Below are positions 11,805-17,800 of a stretch of DNA of 64,000 bases, one piece after another. The DNA is taken from positions 3,410,001 to 3,474,000 of the forward strand of contig NW_026889752.1 of the NCBI RefSeq assembly GCF_033153115.1. The letters run 5' to 3'. Origin of the DNA: Saccostrea echinata (Eukaryota). The notes under the pieces were generated by a model, which was given only the letters and a program-made list of their open reading frames with translations, had not been told where the DNA came from and searched no databases. The position numbers were made by a program, and so were the translations under genes. The first letter of the stretch is position 1, and the number at the start of each line of letters is the position of its first letter.

Positions 11805-14800
11805 GTCAAGTTCTTAACTTACAGATTCCTGAGCAGCTAGCTGTGCATTGTGTTCAATTTCTGCTGCCTCTGCCCTCAATCTGGCAGCTTGAAAAAGAAA
11901 AAATATAAATTGCAAATGTATGGAACACAAATGTGATTTGCTACTCTGACATTCGGATTTGTACCATTCATTTTGTAAGTTTTCTTAGCAACACTTTTTT
12001 CAGTTCCTTTTTCAACATGTGTAAAATTGATAAAAATTCAAATTCAGATGTGTTAATTGTTGTTGATAACCTAAAGGTGTTTTATGACCTTGATCCAAGG
12101 TCAAACTAAAAGGTGACTTTTGCAACTCTTCCCTCAGCCTGTGCATGGACCTGGGGTGTAACAATCTCTCTCTCTCTCTCACTCAAAGTTGACCTTTTCC
12201 ATCTGAGATTAAGATTTTCCAACTCCCAAGTCAATTTTAAATGATGCTCACCTTCGATCTCGCTCTCACACTCGATGATGATCCTCTCGGCCTGAGCCTG
12301 AGCCTCTGCCTTGGCCTGCCCCGTGGACTCGACAGCAGCAGTGATTGCCTGGAGCTCCAGCAGTTTGGTCCTTTCCTTCTCTGCTTCTTTTTCGTTGTAC
12401 AGTTTTTGTCGCTCTAATTCACCCCGAGCTATCTGTTCATTTCTAGCTGCCTCGTGTGATGCTGCTGCCTCAATGGAGCTAAAAGTTCATGATTTTCATC
12501 TTTGAAAGTAAACTTTAAACTCTCTTTGAATTTAATGTACTATTTTGTATATGTACTTAGTAAGAGTTATCTCCCTTAAAATGTGTTTATTAATAAATTC
12601 ATATAAAACGAATGCAGAATTCCAATGAATAATTATGCTGCACTATAACATATTCATCACTTCACAGTATAATTTTCATTTCCATGAGGAAATATGAAAA
12701 TAAGATTTTTACACATGTACATAGTGTAAAATCAATGAAAAGTGGGCATTAAGGGGATGAAGGACACATGGTCACATGATTCTGTTTAACTACGTCATAG
12801 TCTCCGTTTATATAAGTGCAAAACGTGTAAAGCATCAGTTCTTGTATAATTTTTTGACAATTTCTTAACTTTAATTACCATCTTATATAAAAAAATAAAA
12901 AAGTTTTAACATTTTGTAAACATTAACAAATTACGAAAAAGATTGATCCACTCCTCTGTTTCCCTAAACTGCGCGTCCAACAAGTCGTTGACGTCATACA
13001 CGATCTGTTAGTACAGCAAGATCATACTCGGTGAACAAAGGGGCGGTATTATTATGTAAAAACAGGTCATAATCAGTATATAATGAAATATTTTGAAAAA
13101 CGGGGAACACAAAAATGATTTTTGCATGGCTGATGACGGAAATCTTATGTAGGTATATCTTATTTCGCTTATTTAGCTAACGTGTGACGTCATAATTGGT
13201 TTTTCCCGTACTCGAGAAATGTAACATGACACGTTTTTGTCACGCTTATGTCCTCTTTAACGATGTCCTGTAAAATAATGAGGTCAGCTTCATCATTCGA
13301 AACTTTTACAGTTAATCAATAATTTGAAGGATTTGCATTTCAACGTAAATTTAAAAATATTGAATGATAGAATTTTTTGTAAATTACGTTTTTTATTGTT
13401 TAAGTTGTCTTAAAAAGTGCGCACTTTTCCCTATCCAGATGCAGTGTGATAGACAAAACTTGCTTTTTCGAATTTTAAATCCTAGTTATACTCTGAAATA
13501 TTTTAAAATATACATGTCCACTTTGATATTTTTTATGTATGCTTAAAAAATCCCATTATGGACAGAGTAATGCGCCCGGAAACATGGAAAATTAAAACTC
13601 CACTTAGATACTGTAGGGCATAGTATTTGTCAATCAGTATCTCCAAAATAAGGTAAGAAATCTAATGATATAACTGCTTTAAGATATTCGGGACATACTT
13701 AATTAGAAATATACAAAATATGAAAAAAATTGAATGACAAGTATTTTTTCAGCTCAAGGTCCTTCTCCTCCTTAAATCTGATCATTAAATGCTTTTCTTT
13801 CAGAAATATCACTCCATAAAGATTCTGTATTAATGTGTCAAGGACATACTTTGTGGAGATCTCTATGGCGAGTTGTACAGATTTACTGAGACTGTCTCTC
13901 ATCTTCACGTCCACTGGTTCTATGCTCTGGATGTCCATACTACTCAGAACCTAATAAAGGATACAAGCATACAGTATATTCCAATCTTAATCGAATACAG
14001 TGTATTCCAATCCCTGGATATTATATTATCTACCCTTTGTAAAAGTAATTAGAAATATCATGGTTGATATACACATGCAAATCATTTTACATGTGTCTTG
14101 CAGTATAATGCATATTTTTCTGTTTTACTGAAGAAAGTAAAAATTTTGAGGGAGCAATCAATGTAATTGATAAAACAGGTTTAGAAAAATAACATTTTAT
14201 TGAGAAGTTGCATAAATATAAACAAAAGGCAAATAATAAGACACCAGTGTAAAATTTGTTAGAAATTTTTTCTTAAATTTGATACTTGTACTTACCAGGT
14301 TATTTTCTGGAAATCTGACTTCGTTATTCATCTGACCTTTGGCATTAAGACCAAATACTGCAGTGGTGAGCACTTGATTGGAATGTCGATGAAAATCATC
14401 AAATGTGACCTGAGCCACTGCAGCTCTAATACGAGCGCCTGTAAAGAGATTAAATAAATGAAATCTAATTATATAATTCAATTTAAAGGTTTATTGGTAA
14501 CAATCTAGAAGTTCAATTGCAGGCTACTGCCTTTTTTTAAGACTGGCTAAAATTATAAGCCGCAACAGTTACTGTTATATTTCATCTCTGTCAGACAATT
14601 ATACATATATATTGTAATATTAGGACATGCAATTCAAGTTGCTGCTTTTGGTAAATTAAGTAAAACTTCTTCAATAACTTCCACTGAAATTCTAAATACA
14701 TGTACATATACAGTCACATTAAATGTCTCCAATAGACCAGGAATCAGATGACATTTTTGGGCCACCTTGGGGGGGGGGGGGGGGGGAACAGTCTATAATA

Positions 14801-17800
14801 GTACACATTTCATTCATTTCGGTCTCAGATCCTACCAATATTTGTGTAATAAATAGGTCTCCACTATATTTACATCAAACGACTTGTTCTTACCCATTTG
14901 TTTGGAAGCAAACCCAATGAAATCTGGCACAGCAAACAATTTGCATTTCTCCTCTTCTGGACCATCAAGGTCATACTGAAAATAGCCAAATCATATATTT
15001 GAAATTTTTCTTTTGAAAGTTTTTTTTTTCGTCAAAAAAAATTCTTATTGAATTGCTTTCTTTAGCCTAGATACATGTATATATACTTCATTTTTACCTC
15101 AAAATGATTGTTGAAAGCCACTTGGATTCTCAAACGTGCATGGTCTGATGTTTCAACCTAAATCATTGTGAATTATAAAGCCTTGTGTTAATTAAGGGGA
15201 AGAAGGACCTTTAGCTGAAAAAATACTTGTCATTCAATTTTTTTTATATTTTGTATATTTCTAATTAAGTATGTCCCACATATATTAAAGCAGTTATATC
15301 ATTAGGTTTCTTACCTAATTTTAGAGATACTGATTGATAAATACTATGCCCTACAGTATCTAAGTGGAGTTTTAATTCTCCATGTTTCCGGGCTTATTAC
15401 TCTGTCCATAATGGGATTTTTAAAGCATATATAAAAAATATGTAAGTGAACATGTATCTTTTAAAATATTTCAGAGTACGAATAGGGTTTAAAATTCGAA
15501 AAAGCAAGTTTCTTCTATCAGACTGCATCTGGATAGGGAAAATTAAGAACTTTTTAAGACAACTTAAACAACGAAAAACGTAATTTACAAAAAATTCTAT
15601 CATTCAATATTTTTAAATTTAGTATACGTTGAAATGCAAGTCCTTCAAATCATTGATTAACTGTAAAAATTTCGAATGGTGAAGCTGACCTCAATATTGC
15701 ACAGGACATCGTTAAAGACAACATATGCAGGACAAAAACTTGTCATGTTTACATTTCTCGAGTATGGGAAAAACCAACTATGACGTCACACGTAAGCTAA
15801 ATAAGCGAAATAAGATAAACCTACATATGATTTCCGTCATCAGCCAGGCAAAAATAATTTTTCTGTTCCCCGTTTCTAAAAATATTTCTTCGATATACTG
15901 ATTATGAGCTGTTTTTACATAATAATACCGTCCCCTGTATTCACTGAATATGATCTTGCTGTACTAACGGATCGTGTATGACGTCACCGACTTGTTGGAT
16001 GCGCAGTTTAGGGAAACAGAGGAGTGGATCAATCTTTTTTCATAATTTGTTAATGTTTACAAGAATGTTAAACTTTTCATTTTTTTTATATAAGATGGTA
16101 ATTAAAGAAAAAAAAATGTCAAAAATTTATACAAGAACTGATACTTTACACGTTTTGCACTTATATAAACGGAGACTATGACGTAGTTTAACAGAGTCAT
16201 GTAACCATGTGTCCTTCATCCCCTTAAATGACTCTGCAGGAAGAAAAGTATACCAACATATAAAAGTTAGAAATTCAAATATCCTTTTTAAAATTTGAGT
16301 TTTCAATACATTGCAAATAAATACTGTAGACATACTTTTCTCCATGTGGGATTAATTTATTCTATACGTGTGCGGTCAAAAATTTACCTTGGAAAATTTT
16401 CTATGAATTCTTAAAATGCATTAAAGACATATAAAAGCGATCCAAGAAATTTTTGTAATTTTCTACCGCAGATTGAAGAGAAAGTCAGATCGCGCAGAAT
16501 TATGATCCCTTGGAAAAAAGTATGTTTACAGAATTTCCAGAATTTTTGTATGTTGACATACTTGTACATTGTTCATACACTGCACATGTATACTGTAAAT
16601 TAAGTATATACATGTATGGGTGTACCTCTAATATGTCTGTTATAAAATCCGGACCCAACATAAGGCACAAAGACTTCAAAGAATTGGACTTCTTTGGTTT
16701 TCCAGCTAAAATAAAACACAATCAATTACCCAAAAATGTCTCAATTTTATGACATACATGTCCAATGTATCTTTAATACAACGTTTTTTTTTTTCCTTCA
16801 ATTTCTCAATTTGAGACAAGTGCACTGCAAAGTCTAGCAATCCCTTCCAATACATGTACAATTTTTTTGACAATTTTTAAATAAAGAATGACTCAAAAAA
16901 CATACTTCATTTTTCTAGACTTGTTTCTTAGCTTGCTGAAAAAAAAATTTCACAATATTAAAGTACTGGCTTTATCTTACCACTGAGACTGAGCACGTTG
17001 AAATTCTCGTGTGGCCCCAGAATGACTAGATCTGGACCAAACACCACTCTAGCAGTCTTCTCCAGGTAATTATACACCTGAACAGCTGTGTTACCAGGGC
17101 AACGGTAGGTCACGACCCTTGTCTTGTTTCTTCCCTGAAAAAATAAGTTTTTCAACAACCCTAACAAATGAAAAATCTCAAAAGATATGTTTAAACTTTT
17201 AACCCATGGTTACAGTTAAAAAAAAAAATCAGCCTTTAATCTAAAATAACCTTCATGTTTGAAGTTAAAAGTTAAAATAATTCAGTGGTAATCACACTTA
17301 AAATTGTGGTAAATTGGTAATATTTACCGCTAGTACATGGGGATCAATAGACTGTTCAAAATAAGCCATCTTTCTTATATCTCCTGTCCCTAAGCCACCT
17401 CCTTGTCTGTTGAGTAAATAGGAAATTAATGTTAAAGGATAAAATAATGCATTTAACATGCTCATTGACAAATAGTTTCTGTATAACTTTATGAAATAAG
17501 AAATAAATAAATGATAAATTACTCATTTATTAAATAACATTCTCAAATAATTTTTGTATAGTTTTATGTCATTTTTCTGATAACTGAATGTAAAATACAG
17601 TGAATTTGTCTAAATCAGATGTTGTGTATCTGAAATCATGTCTATATATTTCAACGAAAACTTTTAGTCCCTTTCAGGAAATTCAAACATTTAATCTGAT
17701 GTTGGCTAACTTGGTGAACTTCTATGGAACCTTTGGTATTCTCATTAGAAAAAGTTAACTGGATGTCTTTATTCTCAAACTATTTTTTTCATTTAATAAT

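Follow-up and report, generated by a model that had tools for sequence, protein, structure and literature searches.

Background

Reverse-complementary sequences in the introns on either side of internal exons are well documented to favour back-splicing as well as the skipping of exons, as described in the relevant parts of PMC8330042 and PMC8938519. A circular RNA from the gene encoding the major vault protein (MVP) has been described in humans, where circMVP (hsa_circ_0000688), 256 nt in length, is formed from exon 8 according to the available text of PMC11667818. Among DNA transposons, Kolobok elements are defined by a TTAA target-site duplication together with 5'-RR..YY-3' termini, unlike piggyBac elements, and KolobokP long terminal direct repeats (LTDRs) are about 450 or 660 bp long, generate 3-5-bp duplications and show no strong target preference, as given in the portion of PMC9587614 that treats this superfamily.

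In the window analysed here, a 64,000-nucleotide stretch of Saccostrea echinata DNA, two transposon copies, designated A and B, occupy two MVP introns in inverted orientation to each other and bracket four exons of the gene. With reverse-complementary sequences of about 1 kb and 91.7% identity in both flanking introns, the arrangement has the reverse-complementary matches (RCMs) expected of a repeat-flanked circRNA locus.

The MVP exons bracketed by the pair

Sequence similarity identifies the host gene as the MVP gene, with both a shoulder domain and a collinear full-length match. Comparison with full-length MVP P0004 by tblastn gave 22 collinear segments at E < 1, and three further matches were cross-matches between vault repeats. 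All exons lie on the minus strand, and the exon numbers 16 to 21 are labels taken from the initial annotation. Exon 16 (16626–16705; 80–81 nt, the upstream boundary being ambiguous by 1 nt; spliced contigs) is followed by intron 16 (15158–16625; 1468 nt, GT..AG), which contains copy B, would be about 436 nt long without it, and was spliced at the joint 15155>16624 (cut +2) in 4/4 runs. Next come exon 17 (15098–15157; 60 nt, MVP_shoulder profile positions 11–30) and exon 18 (14894–14975; 82 nt), both placed by Pfam matches and contigs, exon 19 (14296–14438; 143 nt, profile positions 59–104), placed by Pfam, PDB chains and contigs, and exon 20 (13850–13950; 101 nt), placed by spliced contigs. 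Intron 20 (12479–13849; 1371 nt, GT..AG) contains copy A, would be about 348 nt long without the insertion, and was spliced at the joint 12478>13850 in all four runs; it leads to exon 21 (12252–12478; 227 nt), at the start of the cap-helix region.

Exons 17 to 20 sum to 386 nt (60 + 82 + 143 + 101). These sizes and the boundaries at 13850 and 15157 had been given in the initial annotation, and both the sequence and the spliced contigs of the four runs confirmed them. The same exons had been assigned to the MVP shoulder; exons 17, 18 and 19 indeed matched the Pfam MVP_shoulder profile (PF11978) with E = 6.6e-05, 0.009 and 1.2e-12, respectively, of which only exon 19 passed the 25-bit cut-off. 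Solved MVP chains in the PDB matched exon 19 at residues 578–608, and exon 20 had no Pfam match at E ≤ 10. As had been pointed out, 386 is not a multiple of 3: translation against the normal frame indicated that skipping exons 17 to 20 would cause a frameshift that meets a stop in exon 21 at codon 3. No known RNA family matched positions 11700–17450 at E ≤ 1.

Anatomy of the inverted copies

A repeat search joined 12749–13775 to 15192–16227 by six collinear inverted blocks with 88–95% complementarity. The body of copy A, a member of subfamily A, occupies 12753–13771 on the plus strand (1019 bp), has 5'-GG..CC-3' termini and carries no long ORF. It is flanked by TTAA on the outer side (12749–12752), where empty sites of the family support a target-site duplication, and by the corresponding TTAA on the inner side (13772–13775). 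The body of copy B, in reverse orientation on the minus strand at 15196–16223 (1028 bp), belongs to another lineage and is sister to a genomic copy, L032; its target-site duplications lie at 15192–15195 (inner) and 16224–16227 (outer). Along the 1019 bp of copy A's body, gapped alignment gave 934 matches and 85 mismatches, or 91.7% identity, with 9 gap columns in 5 openings. Chance does not account for this similarity, as the two arms are members of a single repeat family.

The inverted blocks, the alignment and the TTAA flanks all bear out the earlier description of the two arms as an inverted pair of a single element, whose outer limits, 12753 and 16223, had been placed exactly. The previously reported distances from the inner ends to the splice sites, 78 nt for copy A (13850) and 38 nt for copy B (15157), are correct when measured from the element body; taken from the inner TTAA, the values become 74 and 34 nt.

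The element family

The family element is a non-coding DNA transposon of about 1029 bp with 5'-GG..CC-3' termini and 13-nt imperfect inverted repeats. Searches of the 923-Mb genome yielded 1,334 first-look candidates with copy A and 1,258 with copy B, and 40 of the 42 scored matches to copy A, copy A itself included, spanned at least 1,007 of the 1,027 query bases at 93–100% identity. There were 491 occurrences of the exact 17-nt 5' terminus with TTAA and 478 of the 3' terminus pattern, and none of the reversed-pattern controls. Of 42 aligned copies, 37 had TTAA on either side. At four paralogous empty sites the insertion point held a single TTAA or TAAA, which marks TTAA as a genuine target-site duplication. 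The GG..CC termini were seen in copies A and B and in the fetched family members. Five longer end-pairs of 1.4–2.3 kb were located by coordinates only.

Assigned from its termini and target-site duplication only, the element fits a Kolobok-type non-autonomous transposon and not piggyBac; Kolobok was preferred because of the 5'-GG..CC-3' termini with 13-nt imperfect inverted repeats. The initial annotation had spoken simply of a transposon, which stands and can now be made more exact as a TTAA-targeting, Kolobok-type non-autonomous element, the two copies coming from different subfamilies. A MITE of the piggyBac superfamily, moved by one of the genome's numerous intact piggyBac transposases, would share the TTAA duplication, and potential sources are numerous, with 123 PF13843 matches in the genome and many open frames of 450–628 aa without stops. 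However, the termini are not of the piggyBac type under the criterion set out in the available part of PMC9587614, and neither the 17-nt terminus within 2 mismatches nor significant terminal similarity occurred at any of the 30 fetched transposase loci. On these two grounds a piggyBac MITE was rejected as very improbable. A KolobokP solo LTDR was also rejected, on the length of 1029 bp and the strict TTAA. An autonomous partner with these termini was not found, including among the same 30 loci.

At one of the piggyBac loci (L070), two direct 17-mers with 3 mismatches were observed.

The family documented by these searches targets TTAA, is of the Kolobok type, has a high copy number and was active recently.

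Origin of the pair

The majority sequences of the two subfamilies, that of A and that of B, differ at 50 of 1027 sites, and copy A differs from its own subfamily majority at 21 of 1027. In the tree of copies, L032, which lies on another contig, was nearer to copy B than copy A was, and copy B grouped with it at 28 differences in 1029, with 30 shared and 12 private changes. Since they come from different subfamilies, copies A and B are considered two independent young insertions rather than the product of a local duplication. Copy B differed by 6.1%, versus 2.0% for copy A, from the majority of copies that had been picked with copy A; the idea that copy B is the older insertion was dropped because both the search based on copy B and the tree placed it in another lineage, with so few private changes.

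In the list of 100 5' termini, no pair other than copies A and B lay within 5 kb of each other. Under uniform placement, the 491 exact 5' termini would give about 0.9 pairs within 3.5 kb in the whole 923 Mb, and the 1,334 first-look candidates about 6.7, so that the closeness of the two copies is roughly what chance predicts at the copy number of this family.

The rarity of two copies 1.4 kb apart, with no second such pair in that list, might suggest that a local inverted duplication or an assembly artefact, not separate transpositions, produced the arrangement. Against this, each copy lies between its own duplicated TTAA in unrelated flanking sequence, the copies belong to different subfamilies with copy B closer to an element elsewhere, the interior between them is unique in the assembly, and spliced transcripts from three samples run collinear with the four exons in it. 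Such an origin is hardly credible and was rejected on the flanks, the subfamilies and the unique interior. No second haplotype or paralogue lacking an insertion was present in the assembly, where the sole other match was 65 nt long at 78% identity.

Predicted stem and splicing of MVP transcripts

The computed arm-to-arm duplex had an energy of -1454.9 kcal/mol with 968 pairs, compared with -251.6 +/- 9.6 kcal/mol for 20 shuffles, and with the entire 3479-nt segment folded, the MFE structure paired 969 of the 1036 arm bases arm-to-arm. Apart from this pair, the gene has no inverted repeat exceeding 42 nt, and neither intron contains a competing pair. Modelling thus points to a real stem potential, unrivalled within the gene, and to a very stable intron-intron stem. 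The stem of about 1 kb put forward in the initial annotation is upheld, as a prediction, by both the duplex energy and the fold.

Transcripts were available as assembled Logan contigs from four small public runs (three samples, two studies) whose RNA nature was guessed; the contigs drop rare variants, and rare isoforms, levels and editing are beyond their reach. In each of the four runs, the full linear chain across both transposon-bearing introns was found on one contig, with the joints 12478>13850, 13950>14296, 14438>14894, 14975>15098 and 15157>16626, each of them a GT..AG junction of the minus strand. Depth was about 0 in the intron bins 14004–14195 and 14580–14771. The would-be back-splice donor and acceptor (13850 and 15157) are therefore working canonical splice sites, GT..AG in 4/4 runs. 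Neither the exon 20>exon 17 back-splice joint nor the exon 16–exon 21 skip joint was found in any of the four runs, as far as assembled contigs, which lose rare variants, can reveal them. Contigs matching the arms had many differing letters and ended at the element boundaries, and therefore derive from other copies of the element. MVP is still canonically spliced, and the transcript assemblies examined show it as linear mRNA. An inverted pair of about 1 kb lying 34–74 nt from the splice sites is thus compatible with normal MVP splicing, and the locus looks like an ordinary recent insertion pair because the visible transcripts are all spliced normally.

By-products or regulatory switch

We consider it most probable (about 0.78) that the locus holds two independent, recent and probably near-neutral insertions, with canonical splicing kept and any circRNA or related product a mere by-product. 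In the proposed course of events, a high-copy, non-autonomous Kolobok-type transposon of about 1029 bp would have inserted twice, in opposite orientation, at TTAA in two MVP introns, enlarging each from about 350–440 nt to about 1.4 kb. In the pre-mRNA, we infer, the arms would pair as an imperfect duplex of about 970 bp, bringing the exon-20 donor beside the exon-17 acceptor. By the reverse-complementary-match rule, it is plausible that at a low level a 386-nt circRNA arises, a skipped mRNA prone to NMD is made and the arms are edited by ADAR; these would be by-products rather than a regulatory switch. Near-neutrality is itself deduced and is stated as probable. In published minigene work, arms this long and this near to both splice sites suffice amply for circularisation; by analogy, some tissue could make considerable amounts of the circRNA by-product.

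The initial annotation had gone further and predicted a circRNA/dsRNA switch, in which arm pairing loops out exons 17 to 20 and yields an appreciable amount of the 386-nt circRNA together with a frameshifted exon 16–21 mRNA, causing a regulated drop in MVP (vault) output. Its structural premises all hold: the stem potential is real and unmatched by any other repeat of the gene, the splice sites are 74 and 34 nt away from the inner ends, and the skipped frame ends at codon 3 of exon 21. The functional part found no support, since a back-splice or 16>21 joint appeared in 0/4 runs and the full linear chain in 4/4, a weak negative from contigs only; no link to vault levels was found, and the youth of the insertions, their different subfamilies and a closeness that fits chance placement argue against a selected regulatory device. 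A switch of this kind is therefore unlikely; as the prediction of a textbook mechanism from a co-location at about the chance level, it is plausible but unsupported. Tuning of vault levels, inversion and composite transposition of the exons, which had also been raised, are pure speculation. Still less likely is that the insertions recently created a 386-nt circRNA and an NMD-coupled skipping route in MVP, with vault output differing among individuals carrying zero, one or two insertions; if true, this would be a natural experiment in which a DNA-transposon pair created circRNA-based dosage control in an invertebrate. Should back-splicing itself prove real, the locus would offer a clean, datable case of a DNA-transposon pair that gave a conserved gene, in a non-model animal, both a circRNA and an NMD isoform. 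For now, the pair is useful as an annotation and as a candidate for mining of total-RNA data in this species.

Comparison with known systems

Xenopus T2-MITEs are non-autonomous elements of the Kolobok superfamily, and the element described here resembles such elements in that it duplicates TTAA at the target site, has purine-purine/pyrimidine-pyrimidine termini and short inverted repeats, is present in many copies and lacks coding sequence; at about 1029 bp it is, in contrast, long for a MITE, and no Kolobok transposase partner was found. KolobokP solo LTDRs, of a lineage rich in bivalves, share the RR..YY termini, the 11–18-bp inverted repeats in a non-coding unit and the abundance of solo units, as far as described in the available part of PMC9587614, and differ from the present element, which is 1029 bp long with strict TTAA.

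Human circMVP provides a published example of a circRNA from the MVP gene; in the available text of PMC11667818, it comes from another part of the gene and another lineage and offers no precedent for the predicted shoulder-exon circle. At the level of result lists, the literature search found no report of a circRNA from MVP shoulder exons or of repeat-driven circRNAs in bivalves.

Unlike RCM-flanked exons known to circularise, the MVP exons are bracketed without an observed back-splice junction in the contigs of the four runs. The arms derive from a DNA transposon, unlike the SINE-derived arms of inverted Alu pairs, and measure about 1 kb, compared with the 13-nt match at C. elegans zip-2 in the relevant section of PMC8330042. 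The MVP locus is like both the inverted Alu pairs of mammals and the RCMs of zip-2 in having inverted repeats in both introns flanking internal exons, near the donor and the acceptor, and here with no competing pair inside either intron.

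Structure of the inverted pair and the enclosed exons

The repeat search of 11500-17500 coupled 12749-13775 with 15192-16227 through six collinear inverted blocks of 88-95% complementarity. In a gapped alignment against reverse-complemented copy B (15196-16223, minus strand), copy A (12753-13771, plus strand) showed 91.7% identity over its 1019-bp body, with 934 matches, 85 mismatches (43 transitions and 42 transversions) and 5 gap openings that span 9 columns. TTAA was present on either side of both copies, which were the only copies of the element in the whole 64-kb window and formed its sole inverted repeat of at least 120 nt; apart from this pair, the search of the MVP gene (5000-26500) identified no inverted repeat longer than 42 nt. 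Both analyses confirmed the anatomy reported in the initial annotation, an oppositely oriented pair in MVP introns 20 and 16, and its premises were precise.

Four exons, numbered as in that annotation, lie on the minus strand between the copies: exon 17 (15157-15098, 60 nt), exon 18 (14975-14894, 82 nt), exon 19 (14438-14296, 143 nt) and exon 20 (13950-13850, 101 nt). Their boundaries, read from the sequence, give the previously proposed sum of 386 nt. The domain limits of rat MVP are further background. In profile and homology searches run exon by exon, with exons never joined, the Pfam MVP_shoulder profile was matched by the peptides of exon 17 (profile positions 11-30, E = 6.6e-05), exon 18 (36-56, E = 0.009) and exon 19 (59-104, E = 1.2e-12), only the last of which passed the 25-bit cut-off, and the exon 20 peptide had no Pfam match at E <= 10. 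Exon 19 also matched solved MVP chains at residues 578-608 and, in a profile-free search, recovered a full-length homologue of 856 aa (P0004), which in tblastn against the window gave 22 collinear minus-strand segments from about 26023 to 5407 (E < 1) and three more matches at E < 1 that are cross-matches among vault repeats. No known RNA family was matched in the region around the pair by the RNA family search.

Other repeats were also observed. In intron 18, about 19 consecutive G residues on the plus strand (14769-14787) weakly match a C-run at 7532-7566, in inverted orientation over 35 nt. A 168-bp satellite at 7536-10400, arrayed in tandem about 16-17 times with units 60-97% identical to the reference copy, lies in the large MVP intron that separates the exons at about 11.8 kb and 6.1 kb; duplicated blocks at 6828-7132/10705-11016 (85-88%) and 10222-10521/11426-11725 (93%) flank it. 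At 42978-63685, a block of about 3.3-7.6 kb occurs four times in direct orientation (60-85% identity).

Identity and origin of the element

Searches of the 923-Mb genome returned 1,334 first-look candidates with copy A and 1,258 with copy B. Among 42 scored matches to copy A, one being copy A itself, 40 spanned at least 1,007 of 1,027 bases at 93-100% identity, and 37 of the 42 aligned copies had TTAA at both ends. There were 491 occurrences of the exact 17-nt 5' terminus including TTAA and 478 of the 3' terminus pattern, and reversed-pattern controls for both gave none; listed termini paired by coordinate formed mostly units of 997-1050 bp, plus five of 1405-2310 bp. The longest ORF was no more than 68 aa. 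Four copies sit in other repeats that have uninterrupted paralogues (locus pairs L025/L040, L008/L021, L038/L009, and L030 with window position ~38285), and since the insertion point of each empty site shows TTAA (in one case TAAA) just once, TTAA is the true target-site duplication.

According to the cited part of PMC9587614, Kolobok elements share TTAA duplications with piggyBac but have 5'-RR and YY-3' termini. The 5'-GG..CC-3' termini found here, which carry a 13-nt imperfect inverted repeat, together with the TTAA duplication fit Kolobok by this sequence criterion. A KolobokP solo LTDR was ruled out, since the profile given in that part of PMC9587614 (about 450 or 660 bp, 3-5-bp duplications, no strong target preference) differs in length and target site from that of this element of about 1029 bp with strict TTAA duplications. 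As for piggyBac itself, the genome contains 123 matches to its transposase (PF13843), many of them apparently intact genes, and the element termini were found within 2 mismatches in none of 30 fetched transposase loci. The best 30 of the 123 matches were mostly open frames of 450-628 aa with no stops, which suggests a piggyBac population that is active now or was recently and is unrelated to the A/B element; one example (C3:3361073-3362149) lies about 49 kb ahead of the window. The transposase locus L070 is flanked by two direct 17-mers (positions ~90 and ~3810, 3720 bp apart) that differ from the element's terminus at 3 positions and may reflect chance or a tandem unit.

Family members showed further features. 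Each of copies A and B keeps the full TGACGTCA palindrome twice and an ACGTCA half-site once (12791-13195; 15782-16185); these resemble CRE/ATF-type sites and could confer promoter or enhancer activity on the family. Locus L014 (G000:C70:1028885-1030355) has the last 160 nt of the element in two extra tandem copies spaced about 218 bp apart, i.e. a local 3'-end multimer. By coordinates, G000:C3:13269702-13270717 has a 3' terminus on the minus strand about 1 kb from a 5' terminus on the plus strand, which may mark two family copies that meet head-to-head at a single TTAA.

The copies retrieved with A and with B separated into two subfamilies, with 50 of 1027 sites distinguishing the two majority sequences. 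Copy A differs from the majority of its own subfamily at 21/1027 sites; copy B differs from the nearest majority at 43/1029 and groups with a locus on another contig (L032, 28/1029 apart), with which it has 30 of its differences in common, only 12 being private. The separate subfamilies and this grouping argue that A and B inserted independently and descend from different source lineages, and a private divergence of about 1-2% indicates that both are young. Origin of the pair by duplication and inversion was rejected because the copies belong to different subfamilies; the A/B locus is single-copy in the assembly. With uniform placement, about 0.9 pairs within 3.5 kb are expected genome-wide for 491 copies and about 6.7 for 1,334, half of them inverted, and A/B was the only pair within 5 kb among 100 listed 5' termini. 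Such co-location is rare per copy, yet expected somewhere in the genome.

Pairing potential and transcript evidence

On the pre-mRNA strand, the arm duplex was predicted to form 968 pairs at -1454.9 kcal/mol, versus -251.6 +/- 9.6 when one arm was shuffled (20 shuffles), with a longest perfect Watson-Crick run of 48 bp (62 bp with G-U pairs). The minimum free energy fold of the 3479-nt segment (-1763.2 kcal/mol) closed at 15192:13775, and in it 969 of the 1036 bases of the upstream arm had partners in the downstream arm. Because exon 16 ends at a codon boundary and exon 21, open in its normal frame, meets a stop at codon 3 when read from its first base, skipping of exons 17-20 would give a truncated message, presumably NMD-targeted.

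Five public sequencing runs were listed with matches to the unique interior (13776-15191), each containing 0.18 of 136 sampled words, approximately the expectation from the four exons alone (266/1386 possible 31-mers). All runs were Logan contigs whose RNA nature was a guess. Four of them (X1, X2, X3 and X5; 3 samples, 2 studies) were mapped to 11700-17450, and in all four one contig held the full linear chain of joints for minus-strand MVP: 11887>12252, 12478>13850 (1371 nt skipped, with copy A), 13950>14296, 14438>14894, 14975>15098, 15157>16626 (1468 nt skipped, with copy B), 16705>16981 and 17133>17327, all CT..AC on the plus strand and hence GT..AG for MVP. Contig depth of 0 to 0.6 in the intron bins 14004-14195 and 14580-14771 identifies these contigs as spliced RNAs. 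Neither a back-splice joint (exon 20 to exon 17) nor the skip joint 12478>16626 was present in the contigs of the four runs, which show presence rather than absence and which rare forms could escape. One additional joint inside copy A, 13273>13701 (X2 only; side 20, depth 6.3), was taken to represent a deleted element copy at another genomic site.

Contigs over the arms carried many differing letters and turned loose exactly at 13776, 15192 and 16230, indicating that they derive from other family members and are therefore uninformative on the A/B locus and on editing. At 11700-11891 contig depth was very high, reaching 6699 in X1, and numerous differing loose ends fell at about 11803-11808; this segment resembles 10432-10593 and a flank of locus L019, and probably represents a dispersed repeat that is transcribed widely and adjoins an MVP exon.

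Interpretation and comparison with known systems

On the best-supported reading, A and B are recent, probably neutral insertions of the Kolobok type in an MVP gene whose splicing is normal. Pairing of this kind was reportedly described in classical Alu-pair and minigene studies, and DHX9 belongs to the background of the repeat-pair mechanism. Circular RNA, exon skipping and editing, unobserved here, would plausibly be low-level by-products of this known mechanism; the cited part of PMC8938519 reports a regulatory role of ADARs for circRNAs of this type. No evidence was found for the switch, inversion or composite transposition put forward in the initial annotation. The human circMVP described in the cited portion of PMC11667818 consists of exon 8 (256 nt) and, on that description, is unrelated to the predicted circle of exons 17-20.
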